64,000 nt of DNA from Phaeosaccion multiseriatum (lineage: Eukaryota > Protista > Ochrophyta, other classes): positions 4,712,001-4,776,000 of the forward strand of contig OZ218952.1 in the NCBI GenBank assembly GCA_965112735.1, read 5' to 3'. The translations under genes were made by a program, and so were the position numbers. Each line of letters opens with the position of its first letter. Within the stretch, counting starts at the first letter, position 1. Below, one piece after another: positions 17,074-64,000 of this stretch. The notes below the pieces were generated by a model that worked only from the letters and a program-made list of their open reading frames with translations, was not told the DNA's origin and searched no databases.

Positions 17074-17114
<41 letters not shown>

Positions 17115-32552: not shown

Positions 32553-32693
32553 ACAAGATAGGTGCGAAGTACATTCATTATCTTCTACACTGCTCTAGCC
32601 CGCCCTCCCCCCCGGTTCCCCCACGCCGACGCTATCCTCACGCGCTGCGGTCGTGGTCCCCAGGGCTGCTGGCCAAGCAGCCCCGGGGCACCG

Positions 32694-32995
32694 TCAGCCT
32701 TCGAACTTGAACCCGTCCTGCGCCGCCAGAGTGCCCGCCACCATTGCTGCTACGGCTTCAGACATGTCGGACTCCTGGTGCAGCGCTCTGACCGCCTGCC
32801 GCCGCTGCACGCGACTCACAATGCCGAGCAGCTCCTCACGCGTAGCGGGAATGGCGTTGCATTCTATCCATCCATGGCCGGCGCGGCGACAAGTCATGCA
32901 GTTAAATGGGGCATTGCCGTTGCCACGCTGCTTGACCGAGCCGTGGAACAGCAAGGGCCGCTGCTGGGTGGGCGTGAGCCGCGGCTGCTGCGCCG

Positions 32996-33026
<31 letters not shown>

Positions 33027-42021: not shown

Positions 42022-44861
42022 CTATCAAGAGGTCAATCTGCGCACCCTTCGCTCGCGCTTTCCCATGCCAAACCTTAGCGAAATTTGCGCTAGGATGAGG
42101 GGGGCTCGCTTCTTTTGTGAGCTAGACCTCGCCAACATGTTTTGGCAACTCCCTTTGGCTCTCCAAAGCCAGGAGATTCTGACCTACTGCACTCCGGATG
42201 GGAAATTCACTCCCACCAGAGTCACTCAAGGCATTCTCAATGCCAGCGAGTTTGCTCAGAGCACTCTGTCCAAGTGCCTCAGCGAGCACTTCGGCACCAA
42301 CCTCGTCACTTGGATCGACAACATCACCATTTGGGCACACACGGAGGAGGAGTTCCGCTCCATTCTCCAGTCTGTGCTTGATGCTCTCGCCAAGGCTGGC
42401 TTCAAGCTTGGCCTCTCTGGCATCTCTCTAGGGAACTCTCAGAAGTTCTGTGGCAAGATCTATGACGGGGAAGGGGTTAAGCATGACCCTGCCAAGATCC
42501 AGGGCTTACTCGACCTCGAGCCACCTCAAAATGGGGCTGAGCTCATTCAATTCACTGCTGCATGTGGTTGGATGAGAGACAGCATTCCCGAATTTGCACG
42601 CATCGTCGCTCCTCTTTTGGAGCTGCAACACAGCGTCTTCAACAAGGCAGCGGCCAATCGCCAGCAGCGTCGCCATCCTGAAACTGCCTCTACTGCAACT
42701 CCTCGCACTAAGCGTGTTGCCCGCTCCATCTCCCTCTCTTCTGTGGGGTGGGGCCCTACACATACGGCCGCCTTTCAAGAGATGAAAGACGCGTTGGCTA
42801 CTCAGACCAAGCTTGCTTATCCTGATCCCGACAAGGCCCGCTGTAGCTTTCCAGATGCCAGCAACCCTCACTGGGGCAATGTGGTCACTCAGATTCCTAC
42901 AGAGGACTTAGGCAAGCCAGTGGCCGAACAACGTCATGAACCTCTTGCCTGGCTCAGCGGTAGTTATACCGGCGCCCAGTGCAACTATGGCACCATCGAC
43001 AAGGAGGCTTTTGCTATTTTGCAAGTCTTTGAGCGCCTACCGTGGCTAGTATCTGGGGTGCACCTCTTCATCTACACTGATCATCGCAACCTACAGTATT
43101 GCTTTAGGCCGAGCAGCATCATCAGTGATGTGCACAAGCCTTCACGCGAGCGCTTACAGCGTTGGTCAGTCTTTCTTTCGGGCTTCGACTACGAAATTGC
43201 CCACTTGAGCGGAGAACTGAATGTGTGGGGTGATATCATGTCGCGCTTCCGCTCACTCCCCAACTCTCCACCTGTATCTGTCGATCCTTCTTGTGATGAC
43301 ACAGTGCACGTGGCAGCCCTGGCGCGCAGCTTCGCTCCGGGTGCTATTCATGACTCTATGGACAGTGACTTCCTATGGCCCTCCATGGATGAGCTACGCT
43401 CTTCACAAGCAGCTGCTCAAGGAGACCTCACTCTTGAGGACCTCGCCAAGGCCCAAAGTCTCAAGTCCATTGTTCTGGATCAAATCCAAAACGTTCTTGT
43501 CATTCCCCTTTCGGAAACCTCCAACCCAATTTGGGTACCCAATGACGACATTGACCTACAGGTCCGACTTGCAGTCATCGCCCATCAAGGGTCTGCAGGC
43601 CATCGTGCCATTGACGTCACTCTGACAGTCCTTTCTGAGCGCTTCTACTGGAGCACAATGGCAAACAATGTTCAGAGCTTTGTCAATCATTGTCTTCATT
43701 GCCTGACCAACTCTAGTGGCCACCGTATTCCACGACCACTCCGTGGATCAGTGCACCCCACCAAGCCTAACCAGATGATTCATTTTGATTTCGTCCACAT
43801 GCATGACTTGGGCTGCACCACCTTGCCATATCTTCTCGTCATTGAAGACGCCTTTAGTGGTTACACCATGCTGAATGAGTGTGCCACCCCTACAGCGGAC
43901 GCCGCAGTCAGCGGACTGATGCGATGGTTCAGCACCTTTGGTGTGGTAACCAAATGGCAAAGCGACCGTGGTAGTCACTTTCTCAATCATGTGATGACGC
44001 TTAGCCACTGAGCTTCGCGCCCTTCATCGCTTCTCTGCCCCTTACTCTCCTTGGAGCAATGGCTTGGCAGAGCGAGCGGTTCGCACTACAGTTTCTGTGT
44101 ATCGCTCTCTTCTCTCGGAGTTTCGAATCTCCCCTGACGACTACAATTTACTCACACCTCTTGTGCAAGCTGCTATCAATACCACGATCAGCTCCACACG
44201 CAAAGAAACACCTCTCTACTTGCACACTGGTCTACGCTCGAAGACACCTCTTGATATCGTCTTGCAACGAGGCGACTCCTTTGACGTCAACTTTCAGTCC
44301 ACTTCGATCACTCCAAAGCAACTCCAAACTTATGGAGCACAGCTACAAGCCGTTTTGGACGACAGACATGCTGCAGTGGCTGCTCGCCTAGAGCACTCTC
44401 GAGCGACGGCTCGCACTCGCCACAACAGACGTCTGGAACTGACCTCTCTCGGACACCAGCATCGTAGGGAAATGGCCATCTCGGCTGACCTCAACTATGA
44501 GGGCCTCTACATGCCGGGCATTTATGTTCTTGTTGCTTCTAACAGCCGCTACTCCAAGCTTTCCGGAGTCTGGCAAGGCCCCTATCGTCTACTCGAGGAG
44601 ATTGACACCCTCGTTTACAAAGTGGAACATCTTGTTTCTAAGCAAACTTCTGAGGTACATGCTTGTCGCTTACGCTACTATGCCGATCAGCATCTCAACG
44701 TCACCACTCAACTCTTGCACCAGATCTCACATGACTCTGCTTCTTGGGTTGTCTCTTCCTTCACGGATCTTCAACGACCGTCGCAAGGCGATTCCTGGAA
44801 GGTCTACACCTTCTGGAAGGGCTTCAATGCCGCTGACGCTACATGGGAACCTCTGTCATGC
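42022..44861 (+). pseudogene. pol: Pol of D (RT, RNase H, integrase, chromodomain start), frameshift near 44005
   Basis: ELDLANMFWQ, WIDN, FPDAS, YTDHRNL, CLHC, QSDRGSHF, GPY. Confidence 0.92.
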
Positions 44862-45294
44862 TGTTGGAAGGCCTCAGAGTGAGAAGGACCATAAGTCAAT
44901 GGTCGGTGTGTCCTATATTACGTAGATTCTGAGTGGAGGAGGACGTCAGAACGGTGATCTTGGTATAAGGAGAGCCTAGCAGCAGGGCTTGCAAACGGGT
45001 TCCATCCCGTATAATATATCAAGTGTTACCACTTGTCTAAGCGGCTTAGGTCGCTTTTACAACCCGTTTTGACACAATTGCTGGTGAGGATATCCGAAAA
45101 ACAAAGGAAGGAGAGGAAGGAAGGACAGGACCGGGAAGGCAGGAGGCACACAGGCCATCTAGGACCAGACTCGGAGGCGGTAGGCAGTACCAGCACACGG
45201 CCTACAGGGGACAGTGGCTGCCACAGCGGTGGGCAGAGGATAGGCAGCAGGCAGGGAGCGAACAGCAGAAGCGGCACAGCTGTGTGGAGGTGAC

Positions 45295-46989
45295 GTGAGG
45301 GGCGCTCGGTCGGCCACAGCGGCACCCATGGCGGATTCTCCCACCAGTGTGGTCCCGAGTGGTGTTCGGACTCGCGCCCAGCGCGCTGCCGCTGAGGAAA
45401 CACGTGCTGCAGGCGAGGCAACAGCGACGGTCACGCCCCCATCTACTCCTCGTACGTCAGGATTTCTCCAGCGTCTCTCTGGTGGTCTCACTGGGTTCCT
45501 CTCTCGGCAGTCGGTGGCCCTCTCGGCGGCTGACGAGGCGGAGGTGGACGCTCAGGCTGAGCGGGATGTGGACCGGGTTATACAGGCGGGCGATCTGCAT
45601 GCTGCGGCCCTCGAGGCTGATGCCGCGGCTGGAGCGGTGGAGGAGGAGGAGGAGGAGAATTCGGAGGAGGAGGAGGAGGAGGAGGAGGAGGCGGAGGCGG
45701 AGGAGGAGGAAGGGACGGCTTCGGCGGCAGCGGGGATGGCAGGGGGTACTGTGGGCGCTGTGGCAGACGGCAGGGCTGCGACTGCTGCAGCCCCGACGGT
45801 AGCGGAGGCAGCGGGCGGCATCGCTGTCGGTGACGGGTTGGGGGTGCAGCAGCGGTTGCTAGCGGCTCAGATGTTGGGGCTGCAGCAGCAGATGGCCAGT
45901 TTGCATCTCCAAGCCTTGCCGACCGGTGGCCCTGTGCTGGGGGGGGGGGTGCAGACGATTCGGAGCTTGCCCGCTAAACTCTCTCTCATGCCCACGCTCA
46001 CCTGGGGCATGACGCACCGGGCCACGTTGGAGGTCGTCTCCGAGTGGATGCAGCAGCTGGAGTCCTGGGGCTACATGCGGCACGGGGAGGTGAAGGAAGA
46101 GCAGTGGGTGGAGGTGCAGCGTCTCATGACTGAGGGTTTCTCGGTGATGGAGCGGAGTAAGCTCGATACAGCGGTGAGTGTGGAGATGTCTGCACCTGAC
46201 ACTCCGCCTTTCTACCACGCGGCCGTGAGGGCGCTATTCCGGTTCTTTCACACGGTCGAGCTGCCGAGCGCCGCGGTGGTACGGAGCCTGGTGACGTCCG
46301 AGTTGACGGGCTGCATGGAGTCCAATCTCAAGCTGGTGACGGGGGTGTATCAGGTTAACGGCCTCAGGGCCTTGTTGGCGCAGGTCGGCGGCGATGCTCT
46401 GGCCGCCATCGTGGATCAGGAGGGGATGGCGGTTCTGGAGGCTCAAGCCATGCATCGGCGCAGGGGCATCAGTCAGCAGTCGCTCACCAACGCCATCCTG
46501 CAGGAGGTGAACATGGCGATGGCACACAAGCACTCCTGGGCGGCCTTGGGGACTATGTTGGAGCGGAAGTGCCCCCAGGAGTTCGAGCAGGTGCGCATGG
46601 ATCACAGCCAGTTGTCGTGCGGGGGTGGCGGTCGTGGCGGTGGTGGTGGGGGCGGTGGGGGTGGCAGGCCTAGGAGGGAGAGCATGGACATCAACGCCGT
46701 GGATCTGCCGGCTTCTGCTGCCGCTACCACCTCCATGGCGGCATCGGGTGCCACCCCGCAGACTGTGGGGGCCGTGGTGCCGGCTCTGCACGCGCCGGCG
46801 GATCGCTGCTATGGGTGTGGTCAGACAGGGCACTTCCGTTTTGGGTGTAATGTGGTGCCCCCAACCCCGGGCCTGAAGCGCGCGTTGATGAAGCAATTGA
46901 AGCGGAAGCTGGCGGAGGACCCGGATTTCGACGCCATCTCCGAGATGGTTAGGGGCGTGCAGGCAGAGGCAGCGGGTGGTCTGTTGTGA
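45295..46989 (+). CDS. gag: Gag of C (likely ATG at 45328)
   Basis: 564-aa ORF with a CCHC knuckle. Confidence 0.9.
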   Translation: MRGARSATAAPMADSPTSVVPSGVRTRAQRAAAEETRAAGEATATVTPPSTPRTSGFLQRLSGGLTGFLSRQSVALSAADEAEVDAQAERDVDRVIQAGDLHAAALEADAAAGAVEEEEEENSEEEEEEEEEAEAEEEEGTASAAAGMAGGTVGAVADGRAATAAAPTVAEAAGGIAVGDGLGVQQRLLAAQMLGLQQQMASLHLQALPTGGPVLGGGVQTIRSLPAKLSLMPTLTWGMTHRATLEVVSEWMQQLESWGYMRHGEVKEEQWVEVQRLMTEGFSVMERSKLDTAVSVEMSAPDTPPFYHAAVRALFRFFHTVELPSAAVVRSLVTSELTGCMESNLKLVTGVYQVNGLRALLAQVGGDALAAIVDQEGMAVLEAQAMHRRRGISQQSLTNAILQEVNMAMAHKHSWAALGTMLERKCPQEFEQVRMDHSQLSCGGGGRGGGGGGGGGGRPRRESMDINAVDLPASAAATTSMAASGATPQTVGAVVPALHAPADRCYGCGQTGHFRFGCNVVPPTPGLKRALMKQLKRKLAEDPDFDAISEMVRGVQAEAAGGLL

Positions 46990-47025
46990 CGATGCCCCGC
47001 CGCTACAGAGTCGGTAGCAGCGGGG
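46987..47025 (+). promoter_or_regulatory. Putative UGA readthrough signal (TGA-CGA + 31-nt hairpin)
   Basis: Gag and pol are in the same frame with only this stop between them. Hairpin 46995-47025. Equivalent structure in A at 32658-32696. Confidence 0.72.
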
Positions 47026-49957
47026 ACCGGAGCCCTGGGGCGGGGGGGGGTGGTAACGGCAAGTAGTAGGGCAGTAGATACGGGAGTTAGAGAGGGTAAC
47101 AAATCACATAATGTAACACCTCATCGAGCTTGTGTATCGTCTTCCTTCAGCTTGCTAGCCACACTTCCTCCCTCCCCGAGGGGCGAGATTCACACAGTTG
47201 ACAGCGGTAGGCCCGTTGACAGCGGTAGGGGGTGGGTTGACGGTGATGGGGTGGAGCAGAAGGCGGAGAAGGCGAAGGAGGAGGAGGAGGAGGAGGCGGC
47301 GGTGTGGGGTGCGGTAGGGGGCATGCCGTTGTGGCGGCAGCGAGCTTGCCGTGAGCCACGCCTTCCGAACCATATGCTGCGCATAGGGCGGCAGAAGCAG
47401 CAAGCGCTCACTCTGCGCGCAACAGCTGACGCTGCACGGGCTCGGGCGGCCGCGTTCCTACGTTGTGCAGTGGGGCTCCCAGCCGCTGGGGGTGCAGTCG
47501 AGGGTGCGGCCGTTGGAGGGTTGGGGGCTGCCCCGCTCACGTTGGTGGCGGTGGAGGCGGAGGCAGCGGCGGAGGCGGTGGAGGTGGAGGAGGCGGAGGA
47601 GGAGGAGGAGGAGGAGGAGGAGGAGGAGGAGGAGGCGGAGGAGGCGGAGGAGGCAGCTGACGCAGTAACGGCAGCGGCACAGGAGGGGCCGGCGGAGGAG
47701 GAGGAGGAGGAGGAGGAGGAGGGGGAGGAGGAGGAGGAGGAGGCGGAGGAGGAGGATGAGGAGGAGGAGGAGGCGGAGGAGGCAGCTGACGCCGTAACGG
47801 CGGAGGCACAGGAGGGGCCGGCGGAGGAGGAGGAGGAGGAGGCGGAGGAGGAGGAAGAGGAGGCGGCGGCGGAGGCAGCTGCCGCAGTAACGGCGGCGGC
47901 ACAGGAGGGGCCGGCGGAGGCGCAGGCGGAGGAGCAACCGATGTCGGCGGCGCTGGAGGAGGCGGAGGAGGAGGGGGAGGAGGAGGAGAAGGAGGAGGAG
48001 GAGGAGGCGGAGGAGGCGGAGGCGGAGGCGGAGGCGGAGGAGGCAGCTGCCGCAGTGACGGCGGAGGCACCGGAGGGGCAGGAGGAGGCGCAGGCGGAGG
48101 AGAAACCAATGTCGGAGGGGCTGGAGGCGGAGGAAGAGGCGAAGGAGGCTAAGGAGGAGCCGACGGAGACGGTGGCGGACAACGGGAATGAGGCTCGACA
48201 GACTGGTGCAGCAGCCGATGCAGCAATAGCAGCAGCGCTCTTTGGGGCTGAGCTGCAGGCAGAGGTTGAGGCCGCTGCACAGGGGCCGGCATGCGGGCTG
48301 GTGGGGGCGACGGCGGAGGCACAGCGGCGGGTCTGGAGGGCCCGACAGGTGGTGGTCATTCGGCGGTGGCGTGAAGGGCATGTGTTCCGCTGCCCTGCGT
48401 CTGCGGCTGCTGGCGTGCCCCGGGGGGTCATGGCTCTGCCGCTCGGGGTCCCTCCATGGGAACAGTCTCTCCGTGACCCCAGCCTGCTTCGGGAGTGGGT
48501 GTGGGCGGCGCAGGAGTGGGTGATCAGCGACGCACAGACAGCTACGCAAGCTGCACAGCGCTGGGCGGCAGAGTGCGCGGCCGCTCACGTGCGGGTGCTG
48601 ACGTGGGCGGCCGAAACGTTTGTGATTCCGCCGGCTGGCCGTCGCGTACCTTCGGGGGTGGGGGTTGGGCCTTCAGCCGCGCCGGCAGGGAGTTCTGCTC
48701 TGCGGGTCGACGACTGCGATGATTTCGACGCGCTGCTCGCGGAGCACGTCACCCTGCTGCCGGAGTGTAGTGGTGCTCTTCCTGCATTGTCTCCGACGGC
48801 GAAGGCGTGTCGAGCAGCTGCGCTCCTGGCACCAGCTGCCGAATCGGTGGAGAGGGAGTGCGTCAGTGGGTGCTCTCTGAGTGCGGAGCGGGAGCCCTGT
48901 GAGGTGTGCGTGCAGCGAGCGAGGGTGGAGATGGCGGCGCTCTCAGTCACTGACGATACAGGGGCAGCGTATCTGCGGCGGGAGGCGAGGCGGAAGCAGA
49001 TTGAGATGACTCTGGCGATTAAGCAGACAGGGCGTACCGGGGTGTCGGTCAATCCGCGTGGGCATACGGTATCGGTGGTGCTTCAGTCTGCCCTTCAATT
49101 GCGCGAGCAGCTGCCACGGGCTCCGGTGTCGCTCACGGTGCAGGCCTTGGTGGACACCGGCGCCACTCACACGTGTGCCTCACGTGCGACCTTTGATCGT
49201 GGCGTCGCCGCAGGGGTCTTTCAGGTGCGCGATTTGGCGGAGGAGCGAGTGGCAGTTCGGTACGCCACGACTCAGGCCGCTACGTCAGCCTCGCTCGGTC
49301 GGGTGTGGGTGCAAATCGCCCTCACGCCTACGTGTCAGCCGGTGGTGGCCATGTGGGTAGTGGAGCACCTCGCCCGTCCCTTGATATTAGGCCAAGACGT
49401 GCTCACGATGGTGGGGGCGGTTACTGACCACAAGGTTCATCAGCTGTACGTGCATCCCACGGAGGCGAGTTCTCCGTCGTCGGAGCCGCGGTCGGAGGTT
49501 GACGATACCATCGCCGTGGCCGCTGTCAGCTTGGGGGAGTGTCAGGTGCTGGCGACTGAGGCACTTCGCCTCGCCCCGGGCGGCAAGGCCGTGCTCGTGC
49601 TGGAGGCGGACGGAGGTGTCGCAGGCGGGCGTCTCAGTGTGGAGTTGGGTGCCCACGGGCAGTTGCAGGCGCAGCAGGAGGCGTTGTGGTGGCTGAACCA
49701 CGAGCAAGTCCTGGTGAGTCGTGCGGCGTGCGTGGTCGGTGCCACGCAGCAGTGGAGCATCGGTATACACAATCAGCACAATGAGACGATCGTCGTGGTC
49801 CCTGGGCAGGCTGTGGGCGTGGGCACGTATCTGCTGGCGGAGGAGGATCGGCGAGCAGCGGTGGAGGTGGCGTTGTGTGAGCCGGCTCCTCTTGTTGCGC
49901 CTTGCACGCCGGCCGGGGGCCTTCGTCCGCTCCCGCGTCGCTGGGCACGCTGGGGTG
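46990..49957 (+). CDS. pol: Pol of C, 5' part (Glu-rich linker, Cys cluster, aspartic protease, beta-rich domain)
   Basis: ALVDTGATH and LILGQD protease motifs. Rejoins 51591 in frame after removing B1 and one TSD. Confidence 0.9.
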
Positions 49958-51586
49958 TGTTGGAAGGCCTCAGATGAGATGGGCCATAAGTCAATGGCCC
50001 AGGCCCAGGCAGATACAGTGAGAACGGGTGGCGTGGCTCTCACTATCCTATGTGCGAAGGTGGTCGTTTAGGACTAGCATGCAATAAGTTAATAGAGGCA
50101 AGGCTGGCTGCTAGGCTGGCTTTGGGGTTGCTGTTACCTTGTCCGTGTGTCTAGTTCTATCCTATCTGTAGGCGACAGCGCATGTCGGTCGTGCGTACGT
50201 CGTTTTACAACCCCAAAGGCCCGAAAGCAGCACTTAGCCAAGAGGCTTAGGCAGGGAAGGAAGAGGCGTGTTAGGGGAGCACCGTGCGGCACATAAGCAG
50301 TGCCGTACGACGTGCGACAGCAGCGGAGTTGTTGTTGCACGGAGAGGCGGGAGTGGAGAGAGAATTGCCGGGAGTGGTGTCTACAGCGGGCACAGCTTTC
50401 GAGTGTGGCAGCAGCACGGATGTTGTTGTTGCACGGAAATGGATGCTGAAGGTTGGTGGGCAGTGGAGAGAGAGAATTGCCGGGAGTGGTGTCTACAGCG
50501 GGCACAGCTTTCGAGTGTAGCAGCAGCACGGATGTTGTTGTTGCACGGAAATGGATGCTGGAGGTTGGTGGGCAGTGGAGAGAGAGAATTGCCGGGAGCG
50601 GTGTCTTACAGCGGGCACAGCTTTCGAGTGTGGCAGCAGCACGGATGTTGTTGTTGCACGGAAATGGATGCTGGAGGTTGGTGGGCAGTGGAGAGAGAGA
50701 ATTGCCGGGAGTGGTGTCTACAGCGGGCACGGCTTTCGAGTGTGGCAGCAGCGCGGCTGTTGCTGTTGCACGGAGCTTGGCGGGAGACAGAGAAGGATAC
50801 TCGCAAGGCTGCTTTAGGGACTGTCTGGGTGCCTTGTAGGCACACCAGTAAACACTTTAGCAGTCAGCATTAGTGGTGCGCAACGAGGCTTTGGCAACGC
50901 TGGTGGCGAGTAGGAGTGGAGAAAGATATGGCGCGGGTGAGTTTGAGTCGTGGGATGTTCTCATCCGTGAGCCTGTGTGGGTGAGTTTGAGTCGTGGGAC
51001 TTTCTCATCAATACAGGGGGTGTGTGTGGGAGGAGCGGTCGCACACATCTGGGTGAGTGTTGCATAATGCTCATCCGTTTTCTTTTTTTGGAAGCAGCAT
51101 GGTGTTAGAAGTCGTGCTTTTGCTAGACTGGTACCTCCCGGTCTGAATTCAGAGGGTAGGTACCAGTCTAGCAAAAGCACGACTTCTAACAATGGAGGCT
51201 TGTGCGACAGTCGAGCTTCAGTAGGCGAATCCGCTTGTGTTGCGTGGGTACACGCAACAGTCTTGTCAAGGGGATGTTGGAAGTGGCGGATAGCTATTGG
51301 GGATGTTGGAAGGCCCCGGGATAGGCATTGGGGATGTTGGAAGGCCTCAGATGAGATGGGCCATAAGTCAATGGCCCAGGCCCAGGCAGATACAGTGAGA
51401 ACGGGTGGCGTGGCTCTCACTATCCTATGTGCGAAGGTGGTCGTTTAGGACTAGCATGCGATAAGTTAATAGAGGCAAGGCTGGCTGCTAGGCTGGCTTT
51501 GGGGTTGCTGTTACCTTGTCCGTGTGTCTAGTTCTATCCTATCTGTAGGCGACAGCGCATGTCGGTCGTGCGTACGTCGTTTTACA
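49958..51586 (+). mobile_element. B1: 1.6-kb non-coding (TRIM-like) LTR element
   Basis: 252-bp LTRs at 49958-50209 and 51335-51586 (one visible mismatch). TSD GGTG. Internal ~115-bp tandem repeats. Confidence 0.95.
51103..51191. mobile_element. 89-bp palindromic mini-element (TGT..ACA)
   Basis: 34-bp perfect inverted arms, 4-bp TSD ATGG; absent from the B2/B3 homologous sites. Confidence 0.85.
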
Positions 51587-51590
51587 GGTG

Positions 51591-54500
51591 CGTCTCGTGC
51601 TGTGGTCGGTGGCGAGGAGCGTGGTGGTGGTGTCGGTGGCGGAAGTGCAGCAGCAGCCGGAGGAGGAGGAGGAGGAGATGGCGGAGGAGGCGGAGGAGGA
51701 GGCGGAGGAGGCGGAGGAGGAGTAGGAGGAGGCTCAGAAGGCGAAGGAGGAGGAGGAGGAGGAGGAGATGGCGGAGGCGGCGAAGGTGGAGGAGGAGGAG
51801 GCAACGACGGAGCGCCCCGACAGGCGTGGCTCGAGGCTGTGGCTTTGCGTGAGCGCTGGGGACGCGAGACAGTGGCCTCCGATCTGGTCGATGGGCCTGA
51901 GGATGTTTTCCGCCCTGTGCCGCTGGGGCCCGTGGCTCTGGGAGCCGTCCGTGCTCCGGTCGTGCAGGCAGTGCGGCCCGTGACGAGGGAGTCGGGCAAA
52001 CACAGGCCCTGCAGGCCTGCTCGGCTGGGGCTCGGTCGGCGTCTACGGGTGGCGCGGCGGCACGTCTCACTCTCAGTGGAGGGGCCTTTTACTGCTGGTC
52101 CTAGCATCTTGGCTCGCCACGCACGGGCTGTAGCGGCCGCAGCAGCAGCTGGCGGCGGCGGCGGAGGCGCAGCAGTCGCAGGAGGAGGCGAAGGAGGAGG
52201 AGGGGGAGGAGGAGGAGGAGGAGACGGAGGAGGAGGAGGAGGAGGAGGAGGAGGAGGAGGAGGAGGAGGAGGAGGAGGAGGAGGAGGAGGAGGAGGAGGA
52301 GGAGGAGGAGGAGGAGGAGGAGGAGGCGGAGGAGCAGCAGGAGGAGGCGCACCTTCCCTGTGCGTGTCTGAGGCCGGTGTGGCAGCGGTGGACGGGGGGC
52401 CCTCAATTGGCGACGCTGGGCCTGGAGGAGGAGGAGGCGATGGAGGAGGAGCCAGCGGAGACGCAGGAGGAGGCGGGGGAGGAGGAGGAGGAGGAGGAGG
52501 CGGAGGGGGAGGAGGAGGAGGAGGAGGAGGAGGAGGAGGAGGAGGAGGAGGAGGAGGAGGAGACGCAGGAGGAGGGGCACCTTCCCTGTGCGTGTCTGAG
52601 GTCGGTGTGGCAGCGGTGGAAGGGGGGCCCTCAATTGGCGACGCTGTGACTGGGGAGGTGGAGGTGGTGCCGACCACGGAGTCTCCCCAGGCCGCCCTGC
52701 ATGCATTGCAGGATGACGTGACGGCTGGGCAGCAGGTTGAGGCTACTCAGGGCTGTCTGCAGGGCCCGACCTGGACTATCGACGAGCATGGTGCCTTGAC
52801 GTTGGGCGGCACGGGTGAGGGACGGCAGGCGGGCACACGGGAGGCCGCTCACAGCTTGATCGTGCGTGAGTGGGCGCCTCGCCTCGCAGCGAGTGGGCAG
52901 GAGCGGCTCCGTACGTGTTTGGCGGCTGCGGAGGTGGGTGCAGTTACGGCTCTCCTGCTCCTCCGCCCACACGTGCAGCAGACGCAAGGGGGCCTGGAGG
53001 GTGTCGATGATGTGGTGGTGGCTCAGTGGTTGGAGCAACTCTTGTCCATGTGGAGCAGTCACTCGTTGCTGAAGCAGGCCGGTGTGGAGACGGAGCTGAA
53101 CGCAGCACTGCAGTTGTTTCTCACCATTCGGCGGCTACTGTGGCAGTGTCGTGCCCTGCGGGCGGAGGTGGGAGGGTTGGCAGGTGGTGAATGTGTGCAG
53201 CAGCAGAGGCGGCGGGCGCAAGCAGCAGTGGCACGGGCCAAATTCTACCAGGCGCAGCTGCCCCAGCACATGCACGCAATGACTATCGGTGATGAAGGTT
53301 GGACAGAAGCGCAGCGGTGGGGCTTGGTGGTGGTGTTGAAGCAGCGAGTAGCGGCCTTCTGCGTGGATGGGAGCGATTACGGCCGCACAGATTCGGGCCG
53401 GTTTGGGTTTCCGTTGCTGGACCCGAAGCAGCCGCCAATTCGGAGTGCGGCACGGCGCTACCCTCCTCCGGTCCGGCGCGGTATTGAGATTGAGTTGAAC
53501 AAGATGTTAGCAGCAGAGATCATCCGGCCCAGCACAGCAGCCTGGGCCACTCCACTCATGGCCGTGTTGAAGACGGACGAGCACGGCAACACCAAGTGCC
53601 ACGAGGACGGCACTCCGATCGTGCGGATGACGTGTGACCTGTCGCAGCTCAATGACGCGTGCCGCACGGAGGCGCCCGCCATGCCAGTGGTGGATGATTT
53701 GCTGGCGGAAATGCAGGGGTCTACGGTCTTTTCGGTGATGGACATCATGTCTGGCTACTTCAATGTGCCCATGGCCACCACGGAGGATGAGGACATCTCT
53801 ACATTTGTCTGCCACAGTGGCACGTACGCCTGGAGAGTCATGCCACAAGGAGCGAAGAATGCACCCGCCACGTTCGTACGCCTTATGAACACGGTGTTGC
53901 AGGGCCTACAGGCATTCGTGGCGTGCTTCGTGGACGACATTGCAGTTTTCTCCGCCACGGTGGATCAGCACATTGGCCAGTTAGACCAAGTTCTCGGCAG
54001 GATGGTGCAGCACAAGCTCAAGCTGGCGCCGAGCAAGGTGGTGTTGGGGGCATCTCAGGTGCGCTTCTGTGGGCATTTGGTGGATAGTGAGGGGGTGCGG
54101 GCCGATCCAGCCAAGTATGCAGCAGTTCGAGCGCTGGCCAAGCCCACTGCGCAGTCAGGCAATCAGGTGCGACAGGTCAGGCGCTTTGTAGGCATGCTCA
54201 GCTACTTCCGCAAATTCATTCCGGCGTTTGCCATGAAGGTGCGGCCGCTCAATGAGCTCTTGCGCAAAGGGGTGGATGTGCGGTCAGCGTGGGGGCCGAG
54301 GCACGACGCGGCGTGGGAGGGGCTCATCGAGGACCTGCTCCGCTCGCCCGCGTTGGCCTTCCCTCACTATGGCTCGGAATCGGTGTTCACGCTGAGCACC
54401 GACGCTTCAGCAGACGGGTTAGGGGGTGTGCTGTCGCAGCGGGATGCCGAGGGGGTGGAGCGAGTCGTGACGTTCATCAGTCGTGCCACTACCCCCACGG

Positions 54501-57500
54501 AGGCTCGGCTAGGCAGTACGGAGCTCGAGCTCTTGGCGGTGGTTTGGTGTGTGCGCAAGTTGAGCATGTACATTTGCCACCATCCCTGCACGGTGGTGAC
54601 GGACCACCAACCCTTGCTGTGGCTGGCGACGCACAAGGACACCAACTCCAAGCTCTTTCGGTGGTATGAACGGCTCTCTGCTCATCATCTCAAGTTTGTC
54701 CACAAACCGGGGCGGGAGCTTGTGGTGCCTGACTGCTTGTCACGCGACCCCTTGCCAGTGACTGAGTGGTGTGATGCGGTGGGAGTGGAGGTGGCGTTGG
54801 TGGATGTGGTGGGTGACACCCTCGCGTTAGGGTGGGAGGATCCGGTGGAAGGTGCGGTGCTGCGGTTTGCTGCCGCGGCGCAGCAGTTGCAAGGGGAGGC
54901 GGTGGCGGCTCAGTCAGTGCCTATGGAGGGACTCTCGTCGGTCACGGCGAGACAGCAGGCGTCGGCAGGTTTGGAGGCGCTGTGCGTGGACAGTGTGGCG
55001 GTCGCGGCGCCAGGCGGCTTCGGGTCGGCTCGGTTGCAGCACGTGGAGCAGATGCGGCAATGTGGCTGGGCTCCAGTGACCCTGTCCCACATCAACGAGA
55101 AGAAACGGGTGATAGAGGAGTGGTCTCAGCTGCCGCTGTTTCTCAGCCACGTGCCAGCAGCGCGGTGCACGTACATACGCACGGAGGAGCAGGTGTGGGA
55201 CATGCGAGCGGCACTGCGGGAGGCGACAGTGGTGGCCATGGACTCGGAGTGGGCTATACGCACTCCTCCTCGGCCGGCGTCTCTGCTGCAATTGGGTGTT
55301 CAGTATAGCGGCGTCGCCAATTCGGAGCGTGATTGTGGGTTCTGGGTGGATTTGGACAGTTTGAGTGGCAATGGTGGTATGGAGGCGCTGGCGGCGGTGC
55401 TGAGTGAGCTGTGGGGCGACGGGGGGATTATGAAGCTGGCGCATCACTGGAGTCACGACCAGCGTGCCCTAGGGAAGTGGCCGGCGTTGGCGCCGCATGT
55501 GTGGACCATCGCCAACTTGGTCGACACGACGCATCTATTCAAGGAGGTGTGGCCTGAGCACTGCCGTCCCATTGGCTTAGCAGACCTGGTTAGTATGTTC
55601 CTGCAGCGTTTTATGAGCAAGGAGGAGCAGATGACGGATTGGACTCAGCGGGAGCTCACTGCGGCCCAGCTCAGCTATGCCTTCGACGATGTGGCCGCAT
55701 TACTACAGTTGCTGCCGAAGATGCGGGCTTGTGCAGTTCCGGTGCCGTCTGCGATGGAAGTGAGCGCGGTGGATAGCGGAGTGGCGGGTGTGACGCGTGC
55801 TGAGATGCGCGCAGGACAGTTCGTCTCTGCCGGGGTGGGGTATTGGGCCGATCGGGAGCACGCCAGTCCACTCTTCATTTTCTCAGCGACCGCTAAGTCA
55901 GTGGAGATGATCGACCTGATCCTTCTTTCTTACCGACATCCCCAGTGGACCTGGACGGAGCTCATGGACGCAGTGGAGCCGTTCAGGGCGCGCTATCGGC
56001 CGGTCGCGGCGCGGAGGCGTGGCAAGCTGTCACTACCTCGAGCGGTTATGATTGAGAAGACGTGGAGTGCCATCGCCGCAGATACGGGCGGCTACTACAC
56101 CATGGTGACCCCCACAGAGGCCCAGCAGCAGTGGCAAACCCAAGGTGTGGCGTGGGACATCCCTGCCGCCGTCGAGGCCGCGGGCGTGGTGGGTGCATCG
56201 ACGGTGGAGGCGGAGCGCACACCGACCGCGGCCCCAGCAGACGCCACAGCCGGCGGCGGTGACGGTGCGGGTGGTGCAGGCGGCGGAGGAGGGGTTGAAG
56301 GCGGCGGCAGCGGCGGAGGCGGAGGTGGAGGAGGAGGAGGAGGCGGAGGAGGAGGAGGAGGAGGCGGCGGACTCACAGTTGGCCGCTCGGCCACGGGGGT
56401 GGAGGGACGAGAGGCTGGAGCGACTCCAGCGGCTGACACCGATGCCCATGCGGCTGCGGCGAGCGAGGCAGCAGCGCTGGCAGACGTGGAGGCCGCAAGG
56501 CAGGCTGCTACGCGGCAATTTGGGTGGTCCCTCCCTGGTGTTCCCCCGGCAGTGGGTGAGCAGTCGTGCGCAGCCCGCATATTGCATGGGGCTCGGACTT
56601 ACCAGCCCGCGTGGTGGGTGAAGGCGCAGCAGCAGGACGCTGAGTTGGAGGGGTGGCGTCAGAAGGTCTTGGCAGCCTCCCCGGGCGAGGGGGTGTTCGA
56701 TGCGGGCGGGGGGGAGTTCTCTCTCGATGGCGATGGCGTCCTTCGCCGCAAGTGGGCCCCCGGGGGGCGACGGTGGCGGGTAGAGCGAACGAGGTTGCAG
56801 CTCTGCGTCCCCAAGGCGCTCAGGCCGGCCCTACTGCATGCCACGCACGGCGATGCGGTCTCAGGCGGCCATCACGGGCCAGGGCGGATGCTGGATGCGC
56901 TGCAGGAGCGAGTGTGGTGGCCCTCCATGAACGGGCATGCGCTGTACTGGGCCCGTTCATGTCTTGCGTGCCAGACACGCAAGACACCACGGAGGCGACC
57001 TCCACAGGTTCCGCTCTCGTCCATATCATCGGCGGCTGTGAATGGGCCATGGGCGGTTATGGGTGCTGACGTGGCAGGACCTTTCCCCATGGCCATGGGG
57101 GGGGAGGAGTACATTTTGGTGTTTCAAGATTGGTTCACCAAATGGACAGTGGTGGTGCCATTGTGCGCCAAGGACTATACAGCGGAGGGCATTGCTCGGG
57201 CATTCGTGCGGCACGTAGTGACGGTGCTGGGGGCGCCCAAGGTGCTGGTCAGTGACCAAGGGTCGCAGTTCACGAGCACGCTCATGGCCGATGTGCTGCG
57301 CGTACTCCAGACATCACAAGTCTTCACTACGCCGATGCATCAGCAAGCCAATGGGCAAGTGGAGCGCTTCATGGCCACGATGAAGGACATGCTGGCGACG
57401 ACAGTGGAGGCCCAGATGCAGCAGTGGCCTGAGTATGTTCCCGCGCTCACGTACGCGTACAACTGCAGAGCTCACAAGACCACAGGCCTCTCCCCGTACT

Positions 57501-58471
57501 ACACTCTCTTCGGTCGACACCCCCCGATTCCACTTCAATCGATGCTGCCTGCCCTCGAGGAGGACGGCTCGTTCGAAACGCCTTCGGCATGGGTGCACGA
57601 GCTGAGGGCGCGGATGGCAGCGGCGGCGCAGGTGGTGACGGGCAGGCGCGAGGAGTATCGCAGCAGGCTACAGCTCAAGAACCGTGAGCGTCGCTGGCCA
57701 GCGCCGATGCCTCCTGGCACTAAGGTGTGGTTGTACCGTCCAGGGGGGGCGGCGCAGGAGGAGGGTGAGGCCATGGAGGAGCAGAAGGCACTGACGCTCA
57801 AGGCGCTGAGTCATGCTTGGGACGGACCGTTCCAAGTCCTGGCTTGGCCCACACAGCAGGCCTTCCAGGCGCGACATGGTGGCATACTCAACGACGAGCA
57901 CTACGCGGTGATGCGCCGTAGCACGGTGTATCTGGATGTGCCGAGGGTCAGAGGCGGGGGAGTGGAGTTCAAGCAAGGGGCGTACCATAGGGACCTCACC
58001 AAGCCGTTCGTTGATGGGGTGAGTGGCCAGCCGCAAGGACTACCAGATGGGTTCGCTCGATACCACATCCGGTACTGCTCAGCCCACTGGGGTACTAGTG
58101 CACTGCAGGAGAAGCGTAGCGTGACCGATGACGAGGTTGGGATAGGGCGGGCGCCCGAGCTGGCGCGGATAGTGAAGCTGAGGTGGCGTAAGGCCACAGG
58201 GCAGCCCCTACGGCGTGAGTACTGTGTACGTTGGGCTGTACGGGAGGGTGGCAGTTATCAGACGTGGGAGTGGGACGATTGGCTCTTGCGGCGCGGAGAG
58301 AGGGCGGCAATAGAGGCATTCGAGGACTCTTTGGCGCCAGGGGCGTTGGACCCGAGCGTGCAGCGCAAGCGTGGGCAGCGGTCTAAACGAGAGCGCACCG
58401 TGCGCGCCATGTTGCACGAGAAGTGGGGGATGGGCATCGCTGCGGAGACGGCGCAACATTTGGGGTTCTAG
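51591..58471 (+). CDS. pol: Pol of C, 3' part (Gly-rich linker, RT, RNase H, DEDDy 3'-5' exonuclease, integrase, chromodomain)
   Basis: MDIMSGYF, MPQG, FVDD; TDAS, ELELLA, TDHQPL; DSEW..HD..YAFDD; HHCC/DDE; EYCVRW..QTWE. Confidence 0.95.
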
Positions 58472-59268
58472 ACCTTGCGGTGGTGGTGGTCGCAGAGACG
58501 GGATAGGCATTGGGGATGTTGGAAGGTTACGGGATAGGCATTGGGGATGTTGGAAGGCCTCAGAGTGAGAAGGACCATAAGTCAATGGTCGGTGTGTCCT
58601 ATATTACGTAGATTCTGAGTGGAGGAGGACGTCAGAACGGTGATCTTGGTATAAGGAGAGCCTAGCAGCAGGGCTTGCAAACGGGTTCCATCCCGTATAA
58701 TATATCAAGTGTTACCACTTGTCTAAGCGGCTTAGGTCGCTTTTACAATGCACGACGATGTTCCTGCACTTCTTAAGGACTTTCTTTCTTCTTTCCAACG
58801 TCGCACACTGGCGGAGGACGCTAAACGCTTCCTTCGGTCTCGTGGCATCTCGACTCGACGTCGACCACGGACAGGCCGCCGATAAAGCTCCCTCACTGGG
58901 AACCCTTTTTTCGGTTTCTCTTACTCTTCGTACATGTACCCTTTTACTTTACTTCTAGATAATGGACGCTCATATTAGATGAGATTTCTCTTTCGAGGGG
59001 AAGTGTTGCCCTTGCATGCCTGTGCATCGATATAACGATCACAATATAGCATGCTATAGGCATATAGGCTCAAATGCCTCCACCCCTGGGGACCTGATAC
59101 TTGAATGGTATCTGGATCGCCCTCTCACTCTTCTAGATAAGCACCTTAACCTAAAGGAGACACAGGCCTCTGATTTGGACTGTGGCAAGGCCTCCAACTA
59201 TTCCAGCACTTGCATCTCTTATTGGTTAGGTTGTTAGTTGCTTGCTAGCAATAGCGAGACTGGTTACA

Positions 59269-60859
59269 GTGGCCCGTTTCTCACTCACCTCCCAGCAGGT
59301 TGGTCGTTTAGGATGGCTCACGGATAAAGCTAATAGAGACAAGGCTGGCTGCCAGGCTGGCTTTGGGGTTGCTGTTACCTTGTCCATGCGGCTACTCCTA
59401 TCCTAGGTGGAGAGCAACGTGACTCTTTACAGCCCCAAAGAATCCCGAAGGCAGCTGACCTTGGCCAAGAGGCTCAGGCAGCAGCTCGGTAGCTTTAAGT
59501 TTGCCGGGAGCGGTGCCTTACAGCGGGCACGGCTTTCGAGTGTGGCAGCTGCACGGATGTTGCTGTTACACGGAAAATGCTGCTGGAGCTTGGTGGGCAG
59601 TGGAGATGGAGAATTGCCGGGAGCGGTCACTTACAGCGGGCACGGCTTTCGAGTGTGGCAGCAGCACGGATATTGCTGTTACACGGAAATTGCTGCTGGA
59701 GCTTGGTGGGCCGTGGAGATAGAGAATTGCCGGGAGCAGTGCCTCACAGCGGGCATGGCTTTCGAGTGTGGCAGCAGCACGGATGTTGCTGTTGCACGGA
59801 AATTGCTGCTGGAGCTTGGTGGGCGGAGGAGACAGAGAACTGCCGGGAGTGGTGCCTTAGACAGCGGGCATGGCTTTCGAGTGTGGCAGCAGCACGGATG
59901 TTGCTGTTCCACGGAAATTGCTGCTGAAGCTTGGTGGGCCGTGGAGATAGAGAATTGCCGGGAGTGGTGCCTTAGACAGCGGGCATGGCTTTCGAGTGTG
60001 GCAGCTGCACGGATGTTGCTGTTACACGGAAATTGCTGCTGGAGCTTGGTGGGCCGTGGAGACAGAGAACTGCCGGGAGTGGTGCCTTAGACAGCGGGCA
60101 TGGCTTTCGAGTGTGGCAGCAGCACGGATGTTGCTGTTGCACGGAAATTGCTGCTGGAGCTTGGTGGGCCGTGGAGATAGAGAAATTGCCGAGAGCGGTG
60201 CCCTACAGCGGGCACGGCTTTCGAGTGTGGCAGCAGCGCGGCTGTTGCTGTTGCACGGAGCTTGGCGGGAGACAGAGAAGGATACTCGCAAGGCTGCTTT
60301 AGGGACTGTCTGGGTGCCTTGTAGGCACACCAGTAAACACTTGAGCAGTCAGCATTAGTGGTGCGCAACGAGGCTTTGGCAACGCTGGTGGCGAGTAGGA
60401 GTGGAGATAGAGAATTGCGCGGGTGAGTTTGAGTCATGGGATGTTCTCATCCGTGAGCCTGTGTGGGTGAGTTTGAGTCGTGGGGTTTTCTCACCAATAC
60501 AGGAGGGTGTGTGTTGGAGGAGCGGTCGCACACACCTGGGTGAGTTTTGCATATTTCTCATCCGTTTTTATTGGAAGCAACGTGGAGGCTTTTGCTACAA
60601 GTCGAGCTTTAGTAGGCGAACCCGCTTTGAGTTGCGTGGGGACACGCAATAGTTTAGTTCAGGGGGATGTTAGAGGTGCAGGGATGGCTGACGGGGATGT
60701 TGAAAGTCAGTATTATGTCAATGGCCCAGGCCCAGGCAAATACGGTGAGAAACGGTGCGTGGCCCGTTTCTCACTCACCTCCCAGCAGGTTGGTCGTTTA
60801 GGATGGCTCACGGATAAAGCTAATAGAGACAAGGCTGGCTGCCAGGCTGGCTTTGGGGT
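59269..60859 (+). mobile_element. B2: diverged family B element (5' LTR cut by D, 3' LTR cut at 60859)
   Basis: LTR remnants at 59269-59431 and 60698-60859. About 6 internal ~118-bp repeats at 59500-60250. Confidence 0.85.
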
Positions 60860-61111
60860 TGTAAAACGACGTACGCACGACCGACATGCGCTGTCGCCTA
60901 CAGATCGGATAGAACTAGACACACGGACAAAGTAACAGCAACCCCAAAGCCAGCCTAGCAGCCAGCCTTGCCTCTATTAACTTATCGCATGCTAGTCCTA
61001 AACGACCACCTTCGCACATAGGATAGTGAGAGCCACGCCACCCGTTCTCACTGTATCTGCCTGGGCCTGGGCCATTGACTTATGGCCCATCTCATGTGAG
61101 GCCTTCCAACA
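60860..61111 (-). mobile_element. B1-type LTR in inverted orientation abutting the satellite
   Basis: 252 bp, near-identical reverse complement of 51335-51586. Confidence 0.93.
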
Positions 61112-64000
61112 CCGGGGCTCACAGATGGGCCATTTCAACCCCACAGAACAGAGTGTACAATCCCACCGAGCACACCAGAGACGCCCGGCGGACTCATGAC
61201 GATCATGGTGGGACCATTTCACCCCCACTGGCCCAGAGAAAGCACAGTTCAACCCTCCCGTGTCGAAATCGGGCGCCAGATGACCCACCGGGGCTCACAG
61301 ATGGGCCATTTCAACCCCACAGAACAGAGTGTACAACCACACCGGGCACACCAGAGACGCACGGTGGACTCATGACGACCATGGTGGGACCATTTCAACC
61401 CCACCGGCCCAGAGAAAGCACTATTCAACCCTCCCGTGTCGCGATCGGGCGCCGAATGGCCCACCGGGGCTCACAGATGGGCCATTTCAACCCCATAGAA
61501 CAGAGTGTACAATCACACCGAGCTCACCCGAGACCCACGGCAGACTCATGACGACCATGGTGGGACCATTTCACCCCCAATGGCCCAGAGAAAGCCCAGT
61601 TCAACCCTCCCGTGTCGAAATCGGGCGCCAGATGACCCACCGGGGCTCACAGATGGGCCATTTCAACCCCACAGAACAGAGTGTACAACCACACCGGGCA
61701 CACCAGAGACGCACGGTGGACTCATGACGACCATGGTGGGACCATTTCAACCCCGCTGGCCCAGAGAAAGCACACTTCAACCCTCCCGTGTCGAAATCAG
61801 GCGCCAGATGACCCACCGGGGCTCACAGATGGGCCATTTCAACCCCACAGAACTGAGTGTACAATCCCACCGAGCACACCAGAAACGCCCGGCGGCCTCA
61901 TGACGACCATGGTGGGACCATTTCAACCCCGCTGGCCCAGAGAAAGCACACTTCAACCCTCCCGTGTCGAAATCAGGCGCCAGATGACCCACCGGGGCTC
62001 ACAGATGGGCCATTTCAACCCCACAGAACAGAGTGTACAATCCCACCGAGCACACCAGAGACGCCCGGTGGACTCATGACGACCATGGTGGGACCATTTC
62101 AACCCCGCTGGCCCAGAGAAAGCACACTTCAACCCTCCCGTGTCGCGATCGGGCGCCAGATGACCCACCGGGGCTCACAGATGGGCCATTTCAACCCCAC
62201 AGAACAGAGTGTACAACCACACCGAGCACACCAGAGACGCCCGGCAGACTCATGACGACCATGGTGGGACCATTTCAACCCCACTGGCCCAGAGAAAGCA
62301 CTCTTCAACCCTCCCGTGTCGAAATCAGGCGCCAGATGACCCACCGGGGCTCACAGATGGGCCATTTCAACCCCACAGGACAGAGTGTACAATCACACCA
62401 AGCACACCAGAGACGCAAGGCAGACTCATGACGACCATGGTGGGACCATTTCAACCCCGCTGGCCCAGAGAAAGCACACGTCAACCCTCCCGTGTCGAAA
62501 TCTGGCGCCAGATGACCCACCGGGGCTCACAGATGGGCCATTTCAACCCCACAGAACAGAGTGTACAACCCCACCGAGCACACCAGAGACGCCCGGCGGA
62601 CTCATGACGACCATGGTGGGACCACTTCACCACCAATGGCCCAGAGAAAGCACTCTTCAACCCTCCCGTGTCGAAATCTGGTGCCAGATGACCCACCGGG
62701 GCTCACAGATGGGCCATTTCAACCCCACAGAACAGAGTGTACAACCACACCGAGCACACCAGAAACGCACGGCAGACTCATGACGATCATGGTGGGACAA
62801 TTTCACCACCACTGGCCCAGAGAAAGCACAGTTCAACCCTCCCGTGTCGCGATCGGGCGCCAGATGACCCACCGGGGCTCACAGATGGGCCATTTCAACC
62901 CCACAGAACAGAGTGTACAACCATACAGGGCACACCAGAGACGCACGGCAGACTCATGACGACCATGGTGGGACCATTTCACCACCACTGGCCCAGAGAA
63001 AGCACACTTCAACCCTCCCGTGTCGAAATCAGGCGCCAGATGACCCACCGGGGCTCACAGATGGGCCATTTCAACCCCATACAACAGAGTGTACAACCAC
63101 ACCGAGCACACCAGAGACGCACGGCAGACTCATGACGACCATGGTGGGACCATTTCAACCCCGCTGGCCCAAAGAAAGCACACTTCAACCCTCCCGTGTC
63201 GAAATCGGGCGCCAGATGACCCACCGGGGCTCACAGATGGGCCATTTCAACCCCACCGAACAGAGTGTACAACCACACCGAGCACACCAGAGACGCCCGG
63301 CGGTCTCATGACGACCATGGTGGGACCACTTCACCACCAATGGCCCAGAGAAAGCACTCTTCAACCCTCCCGTGTCGAAATCGGGCGCCAGATGACCCAC
63401 CGGGGCTCACAGACGGGCCATTTCAACCCCATAGAACAGAGTGTACAATCACACCGAGCACACCAGAGACGCCCGGCGGACTCATGACGACCATGGGGGG
63501 ACCATTTCAACCCCGCAGGCCCAGAGAAAGCACAGTTCAACCCTCCCGTGTCGAAATCAGGCGCCAGATGACCCACCGGGGCTCACAGATAGGCCATTTC
63601 AACCCCACAGAACAGAGTGTACAATCACACCGAGCACACCAGAGACGCCCGGCGGACTCATGACGACCATGGTGGGACCATTTCAACCCCGCTGGCCCAG
63701 AGAAAGCACACTTCAACCCTCCCGTGTCAAAATCAGGCGCCAAATGACCCACCGGGGCTCACAGATGGGCCATTTCAACCCCACAGAACTGAGTGTACAA
63801 TCACACCGAGCACACCAGAGAGGCCTGATAGACTTATGACGACCATGGTGGGACCATTTCAACCCCGCTGGCCCAAAGAAAGCCCTCTTCAACCCTCCCG
63901 TGTCGAAATCAGGCGCCAGATGACCCACCGGGCTCACAGATGTACCATTTCAACCCCATACAACAGAGTGTACAACCACACCGAGCACACCCGAGACGCC
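61112..64000. repeat. 176-bp tandem satellite (>16 copies, runs off the window)
   Basis: Exact 176-nt periodicity; internal sub-repeats ccatttcaacccc / ttcaaccctccc. Confidence 0.98.

Follow-up and report, generated by a model that had tools for sequence, protein, structure and literature searches.

What is a 3'-5' exonuclease doing inside the polyprotein of a long terminal repeat (LTR) retrotransposon? Retroviruses and LTR retrotransposons serve as the standard example of elements that replicate with no nuclease for proofreading or for editing ends. The question is raised by a stretch of 64,000 nucleotides (nt) from the ochrophyte Phaeosaccion multiseriatum (GenBank assembly GCA_965112735.1, contig OZ218952.1, positions 4,712,001 to 4,776,000 of the forward strand), here called the window and numbered from its first nucleotide. 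An initial annotation, made from the sequence alone, had proposed that a Gypsy retrotransposon in the window encodes a DEDDy exonuclease of the RNase D, WRN exonuclease and MUT-7 kind within its Pol, between RNase H and integrase, and that this nuclease had been captured and maintained. Sequence comparison now identifies the element as an LTR retrotransposon of the Ty3/Gypsy kind in which a MUT-7/RNase D/WRN-type DEDDy domain is fixed in Pol between RNase H and integrase. That the element owns a real, selected and probably active exonuclease is, in our judgement, highly probable; its substrate and role can be assigned with less assurance, and are weighed below against four alternatives.

Identity and fold of the exonuclease domain

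The forward-strand translation of 55172–55723 is free of stops and contains every motif that had been quoted, namely VVAMDSEW, ASLLQLG, KLAHHWSHD, LVDT, GLADLV, MSKEEQMTDWTQRELTAAQL and YAFDD, including the aspartate at 55241 and, with it, all four acidic residues and the tyrosine of the DEDDy set. The segment lies in a single open frame of 2315 amino acids (aa) at 51524–58471 on the forward strand. Scanning the whole Pol frame yielded a match to PF01612 (DNA_pol_A_exo1) with an expectation value (E) of 4.1e-15 and 56.5 bits, the cut-off being 23.6 bits; the domain scanned alone gave E 1.3e-16 and 61.3 bits, and the corresponding domain of a second family of the element, described below, reached 70 bits. 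The residues D, E, D, Y and D are invariant in alignments with other element families, with a metagenomic relative (P0001, see below) and with about 40 cellular homologues, and the catalytic motifs are intact in all copies read across the exonuclease stretch (10/10 in the first family, which includes the window copy, and 13/13 in the second).

An AlphaFold2 model of the domain, based on a 45-row alignment, had a predicted local distance difference test score (pLDDT) of 90.6 and a predicted template modelling score (pTM) of 0.85. Its best Foldseek match was the exonuclease domain of Nibbler (7jw2, E 3e-12), with 7jw6 also among the Nibbler/MUT-7 matches; Rrp6, RNase D and WRN exonuclease came next, all at probability 1.00 and with target-normalised TM-scores of up to 0.81, and Egalitarian was found as well. 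By sequence, the best matches in the PDB were small RNase D-like nucleases (diDNase, NanoRNase C), a MUT-7 homologue, RNase D and Rrp6. The profile search and structure prediction suggested with the initial annotation thus both recover a DEDD fold, and profile and fold agree on the kind of nuclease that had been named. Assignment to the DEDDy family is supported by profile, residues and fold, and, judging by the predicted structure and its Foldseek matches, a chance match is excluded as an account of the domain.

Partner domains were sought in the same frame. Mut7-C (PF01927) had no Pfam match anywhere in Pol, including the 360 aa after the exonuclease, and HRDC had none at E up to 1 in that segment (aa 1402–1761). 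When the exonuclease was modelled together with a conserved block downstream of it, from an 8-row alignment, the pLDDT was 46.8, and the fold of the block is not interpretable.

The Pfam matches place the domain in frame between RNase H and integrase, in agreement with the position first proposed. Their order is that of a Ty3/Gypsy Pol (protease, reverse transcriptase (RT), RNase H, integrase), with integrase after RT and the exonuclease as an extra module; the protease match is weak, and the match to the integrase core, rve, has 30.7 bits, slightly below its cut-off of 32.6. The RNase H motifs look intact. A distance of 710 aa separates RNase H from the integrase zinc finger, versus about 130 aa in two other Gypsy elements of the window, which have no exonuclease domain in that interval, so the view that a standard Gypsy Pol is without such a nuclease holds for these neighbours. 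In the last 216 aa of Pol there was no match to Chromo at E up to 1, the mark by which a chromovirus would be recognised; a neighbouring element without the exonuclease has a weak Chromo match. A chimeric or misassembled frame was considered and rejected, as was a separate host gene lying between fragments of transposable elements.

Two families of exonuclease-bearing copies

To see how far the arrangement extends beyond one insertion, we searched the genome (GC-rich, 67 Mb in 22 contigs) and found 41 matches to the exonuclease domain, in open frames of up to 3303 aa, many of them 2000–3300 aa long. About 11 matches are 94–100% identical to the window copy and about 20 are 58–60% identical, indicating two families with 60% amino-acid identity in this domain. 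A representative of the second family has RT, RNase H, exonuclease and integrase in the same order within a frame of 3272 aa. The architecture read from the window copy is therefore repeated elsewhere in the genome, in two families that share the order and keep the motifs, and sequence comparison places the exonuclease module already in their common ancestor. The locus L017, with a frame of 1778 aa, was examined as a third family and rejected: its exonuclease is nearly identical to that of the second family, and the frame ends inside the domain.

All RT matches of at least 74% identity fall in exonuclease-bearing copies, the next closest RT lineage of the genome having only 37% identity, which implies that the domain has become fixed in a lineage that stands apart. 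This other Gypsy-like RT lies on contig C10 (8256–9335, reverse strand) in an open frame of 4622 aa for which no PF01612 match is listed, so giant Pol frames are not confined to the lineage with the exonuclease. Members of the second family (n = 13) differ by only 0–12 nt in 549 and are too young to add power to an analysis of selection. The exonuclease-bearing lineage is young and recently mobile, as is seen from the identical LTRs and target duplication of the window copy and from the near-identity of the second-family copies. On contig C14, at about 2.32–2.75 Mb, a large share of the copies bearing exonuclease and RT, many of which are fragments, is clustered within about 0.4 Mb, which may be a heterochromatic or centromeric zone rich in transposable elements.

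Purifying selection on the exonuclease

Between the two families, the exonuclease at 60% identity has a ratio of non-synonymous to synonymous substitution rates (dN/dS) of 0.23, with dS saturated at about 1.6. The RT, RNase H and integrase core has 83–87% amino-acid identity and dN/dS of 0.04–0.07, and the flanking linkers have 38–47% and 0.31–0.49. Within the window's family, sublineages compared at unsaturated dS (0.16–0.38) give an exonuclease dN/dS of 0.06–0.11, as low as for RT, RNase H and integrase and below that of the linkers; all codon comparisons use the window copy as reference and are not independent of one another. In ten first-family copies, the variants found in two or more copies comprise 19 synonymous and 3 non-synonymous changes, and those private to one copy 8 and 8, as would be expected where selection acts on active lineages and copies, once inserted, go on to drift. 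These comparisons indicate that the exonuclease domain evolves under purifying selection. The proposal that the nuclease has been maintained is borne out by dN/dS well below 1, by the domain order common to both families and by the intact motifs in the copies read.

Relatives in protein collections and in the host

An HMMER search of 1.84 billion representative proteins returned 179 matches at E <=0.001. Only one is close: P0001, a fragment of 186 aa with 50% identity, encoded on a metagenome contig of 917 nt that is too short for its architecture to be read, in a frame that stops directly after the domain. The remaining matches have at most 36% identity. The 28 longest are cellular proteins in which the exonuclease is combined with Mut7-C, tRNA_edit, ankyrin or tRNA_bind domains, and none of these 28 contains RT or integrase. 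Named relatives are a fungal 'exonuclease mut-7' and proteins of Tribonema, Chlorokybus and Gefionella, and the nearest cellular sequences are of the eukaryotic MUT-7/EXD3 type. The element domain is like MUT-7/EXD3/Nibbler in its best fold match and in these nearest sequences, and unlike them in its identity of 24–36%, in the absence of Mut7-C or tRNA_edit and in being part of a retrotransposon polyprotein. With RNase D, Rrp6 and WRN it has the fold and the catalytic motif set in common; it differs in identity (about 18–24%) and in that no HRDC was detected after the exonuclease.

Starting from the RT, PF01612 was absent from the 120 nearest relatives among long polyproteins (30–40% identity), some of which carry chromo, PHD, NUDIX, dUTPase or methylase domains. 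Homologue searches of long proteins, with the whole Pol and with the domain alone, found nothing, which is weak evidence given the length windows and word filter applied. A pattern derived from the alignment of the element exonucleases gave 159 matches in a metagenome scan, none of which was confirmed, and a search of the ESM Atlas for look-alikes of RNase H plus exonuclease gave no usable match. The domain is covered, ungapped within its limits, by contigs of a second study of the same organism at about 99% identity and by contigs of a 'plant metagenome' run at about 87%. Capture from the present host was considered as the origin of the domain and rejected, the host's own PF01612 genes being not detectably closer than those of other eukaryotes in a set of cellular homologues sampled through the element's own matches.

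Structure and surroundings of the element

The complete retrotransposon spans 44862–58747 on the forward strand, and its features are listed in Table 1. The two LTRs are identical over their 200 nt, as had been noted, implying a recent insertion. The further claim that the element moved recently together with the exonuclease stands in part: the identical LTRs and the ATGC duplication speak for it, but the Pol of the window copy is not intact. A nested element interrupts it upstream of RT, so this copy lacks the uninterrupted Pol frame of 3100–3300 aa seen in others; the nested element is missing at the matching point of copy L013. It has LTR termini TGTTGGAAGG...TTTTACA and a polypurine tract GGGATAGGCATTGGGGA that resemble those of the exonuclease-bearing element, suggesting that the machinery of this family may mobilise it. 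Past the 3' LTR (59501–61112) there is another fragment of this small element, in rearranged form, with 113-115-nt tandem repeats in the same orientation (59501–60568) followed by an inverted copy of the 259-nt terminal repeat (60851–61112).

Inside the 5' LTR there is a TATA-like GGTATAAGG at 44962–44970. About 25 nt downstream of it, AAACGGGTT is complementary over 9 nt to AACCCGTTT, located at the position of the primer-binding site. This complementarity within the sequence seems to represent a self-priming arrangement like that of Tf1, replacing a tRNA primer-binding site. The putative gag ORF (open reading frame) had no Pfam match, and no family match was found in the linker between exonuclease and integrase. 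Long Gly-rich tracts of low complexity (GGN repeats) occur within the Pol frame at 51524–52700 and 47500–48170; their length varies by copy, and they inflate the size of the polyprotein.

Table 1. Features of the exonuclease-bearing retrotransposon, in window positions
Feature	Position	Strand	Basis and remarks
Target-site duplication ATGC, 5' copy	44858..44861	+	Direct reading
5' LTR, 200 nt, TGTTGG...TTTACA	44862..45061	+	100% identical to 58548..58747
Primer-binding-site position AACCCGTTT	45061..45069	+	Complementary to AAACGGGTT at 44993..45001 within the LTR
Putative gag ORF, 564 aa	45295..46989	+	Assigned by position alone
Pol, N-terminal part	47050..49957	+	Collinear with the uninterrupted copy L013
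Weak aspartyl-protease match (gag-asp_proteas)	~49135..49407	+	aa 696–786 of the N-terminal Pol ORF; E 0.0011, below the Pfam cut-off
Nested non-autonomous LTR element, 1.63 kb	49958..51586	+	259-nt terminal direct repeats, internal 113-nt tandem repeats, GGTG target duplication
Pol, main part (RT, RNase H, exonuclease, integrase, C-terminal region)	51587..58471	+	Same frame as 47050..49957
Reverse transcriptase core, RVT_1	53654..54076	+	aa 711–851; Pfam E 5e-25
RNase H (RT_RNaseH and RT_RNaseH_2)	54290..54679	+	aa 923–1052; Pfam E 8e-29; RT_RNaseH alone aa 954–1052
DEDDy 3'-5' exonuclease domain, PF01612 DNA_pol_A_exo1	55169..55726	+	Pol-frame aa 1216–1401; Pfam profile, residues, model, Foldseek
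Catalytic codons	55241 (D1240), 55247 (E1242), 55457 (D1312), 55676 (Y1385), 55688 (D1389)	+	ExoI D-x-E, ExoII D, ExoIII Y-x3-D
Linker between exonuclease and integrase	55727..56806	+	Moderately conserved block at ~aa 1430–1545, then a poly-Gly low-complexity tract
Integrase (Integrase_H2C2 and rve)	56807..57337	+	aa 1762–1821 and aa 1848–1938; Pfam
3' LTR, 200 nt	58548..58747	+	Preceded by the purine-rich tract GGGATAGGCATTGGGGA
Target-site duplication ATGC, 3' copy	58748..58751	+	Direct reading

The window is rich in repeats on either side of the element. Upstream, about 930 copies of GTTAGG (telomere-type TTAGGG) form an almost perfect, contig-internal array at 15317–20899, adjoined by an almost perfect array of about 1047 copies of the pentamer CTGGC at 21001–26259; both arrays yield spurious ORFs of about 3700 aa. 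A 176-nt satellite, present in at least 15 copies of 91–96% identity, runs from just past the downstream flank of the element to the window end (61110–63873). On the reverse strand at 28880–34916, an ORF of 642 aa bearing an integrase is preceded by two ORFs of 611 and 739 aa without any Pfam match, possibly a diverged or unusual retroelement.

Possible function of the exonuclease

In the explanation that we prefer, the domain is predicted to be catalytically active, as a 3'-5' exonuclease that depends on metal ions. Synthesised solely as a segment of gag-pol, it would be carried into the particle together with RT/RNase H and integrase, and its targets there, in cis, would be the free 3' ends of the intermediates formed as the element replicates. 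By removing mismatched or non-templated 3' nucleotides from the nascent complementary DNA (cDNA), it could provide proofreading and clean strand transfers, the non-templated additions that hinder strand transfer being among its targets, and it could clean up the cDNA termini ahead of their use by integrase. The reasoning is one of location: a nuclease made solely within Pol would enter the particle, where the 3' ends arising from reverse transcription are its likeliest substrates, and Pol, encoded downstream of gag, is probably scarcer than Gag, which fits a role in the particle better than that of a bulk cytoplasmic effector. We put forward this action in cis on cDNA 3' ends, by trimming or proofreading, only tentatively; the best explanation taken whole, from the identity of the element to the mechanism, comes near to an even chance of being right without quite reaching it.

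Several observations weigh against an enzyme devoted to cDNA. In this clade, RNA is the substrate of DEDDy enzymes (RNase D, Rrp6, Nibbler) no less often than DNA is (WRN), which makes a DNA substrate here a guess. Compared with RT, RNase H and integrase, the exonuclease diverges between families at 3–4 times the rate, which would be compatible with an accessory role or one directed at the host. A metatranscriptome run gave just two short matching contigs, by which transcription is not established. Finally, the frame of 4622 aa for which no PF01612 match is listed weakens the notion that proofreading permits a long genome, and with it the analogy to nidovirus ExoN. Nidovirus ExoN is a DEDDh-type enzyme of RNA viruses. 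Together with the bacterial PrimPol-RT PPRT, nidovirus nsp14 ExoN offers a conceptual analogue of a 3'-5' exonuclease tied to a low-fidelity polymerase; in PPRT it is the RT-like domain, rather than a DnaQ-like module, that has the activity (PMC12439943). By this analogy, the lineage might proofread to an error rate below that of any known retroelement or retrovirus, as the eukaryotic retroelement counterpart of nidovirus ExoN, an extension that we regard as unlikely.

The alternative that survives best keeps the enzyme in the particle and changes its substrate. A 3'-5' exoribonuclease could remove what RNase H leaves of the template or trim the ends of RNA primers, and so help to complete reverse transcription of a long RNA of about 12 kb. 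The RNA enzymes Nibbler, Rrp6 and RNase D among the closest folds, the RNase D-like small nucleases among the closest solved sequences and the location of the domain directly after RNase H are all consistent with this idea. However, neither HRDC nor another RNA-binding accessory domain was detected downstream of the exonuclease, RNase H appears intact in its motifs, and canonical LTR elements complete the process unaided. The element also seems to be self-priming, a scheme which in Tf1 needs an endonucleolytic cut and not an exonuclease. On balance we consider an RNA-directed role improbable.

Alternatively, the nuclease could face the host, trimming or destroying small RNAs or other silencing RNA signals in the manner of MUT-7 or Nibbler. 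Such counter-defence would be in line with the MUT-7/EXD3-type proteins as nearest cellular relatives, with the small-RNA trimmer Nibbler as best fold match, and with the divergence of the exonuclease outpacing that of the core enzymes, as is often the case for host-facing proteins. Yet dN/dS values of 0.06–0.23 give no sign of positive selection, Pfam finds no Mut7-C partner domain in Pol, and a domain produced solely within Pol is probably low in abundance and confined to particles. These points make counter-defence quite unlikely.

A catalytically silent domain, with the fold kept for binding nucleic acid or as a spacer, has parallels in Maelstrom, EXD1 and Egalitarian; inactive RNA-binding DEDD derivatives are known (discussed in PMC5408684), and Egalitarian is among the fold matches. 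The known inactive derivatives have lost catalytic residues, whereas all five are invariant here in both families, in the metagenomic relative and in about 40 homologues of the active type, leaving this option very unlikely. That the domain is a neutral passenger, a piece of host gene carried without function, is hardly credible: LTR elements commonly capture host fragments, but the selection data contradict it, with the domain kept in frame from a time before the divergence of two families whose dS is saturated, dN/dS far below 1 and 19 synonymous to 3 non-synonymous shared variants, and the host PF01612 genes are not close relatives.

Relation to known elements and significance

For a DEDDy exonuclease carried by LTR retrotransposons we found one published precedent, so the claim of novelty stands only in part. 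Rodriguez, Kenefick and Arkhipova (2017; PMC5408684) described a DEDDy exonuclease as a separate ORF3 in Juno and Vesta of bdelloid rotifers, shared with Athena/Terminon elements, with the motif altered to DEED and an intragenomic evolution showing no clear departure from neutrality. Like the present element, Juno and Vesta combine an RNase D-like DEDDy domain, its motif largely kept, with a Ty3/Gypsy-like LTR element, and the roles proposed for the rotifer enzyme, 3'-end processing or one related to silencing (PMC5408684), match those considered here. In contrast to the rotifer arrangement, with ORF3 downstream of pol and the DEED motif, the exonuclease of the present element is placed within the Pol frame, after RNase H and before integrase; its catalytic residues form the canonical D-E-D-Y-D set, it is under purifying selection and it belongs to a different eukaryotic host. 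The rotifer side of this comparison is taken from the published description. In a 2019 opinion paper (PMC6338049), the accessory domains listed for LTR polyproteins include a 'DnaQ-like 3'-5' exonuclease', with three papers cited: that on the rotifer elements, in which such a nuclease is described, Novikova 2008 and Ustyantsev 2017. We found no report of a Pol with the order RT, RNase H, exonuclease, integrase in a literature search that did not extend to subscription journals or Repbase, and the in-Pol position was absent from the two very large protein collections searched. A DEDDy domain in an LTR retrotransposon was thus already known; new here are its position in Pol, the canonical motif set and measurable purifying selection.

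The principle of an added module is the same as for the chromodomain, dUTPase, extra RNase H, PHD, NUDIX and DNA methylase domains of Ty3/Gypsy Pol; the elements with these accessory domains differ in that PF01612 occurs in 0 of the 120 nearest RT relatives. The present element thus lengthens the list of modules that Ty3/Gypsy Pol has accommodated. If the exonuclease works together with RT, it may also be of interest for building reverse transcriptases of higher fidelity. With a canonical exonuclease under selection in recently mobile copies, the lineage provides a natural test of what 3'-end editing brings to a retroelement, whether the gain be in fidelity, strand transfer, integration-ready termini or attack on the small RNAs of the host.

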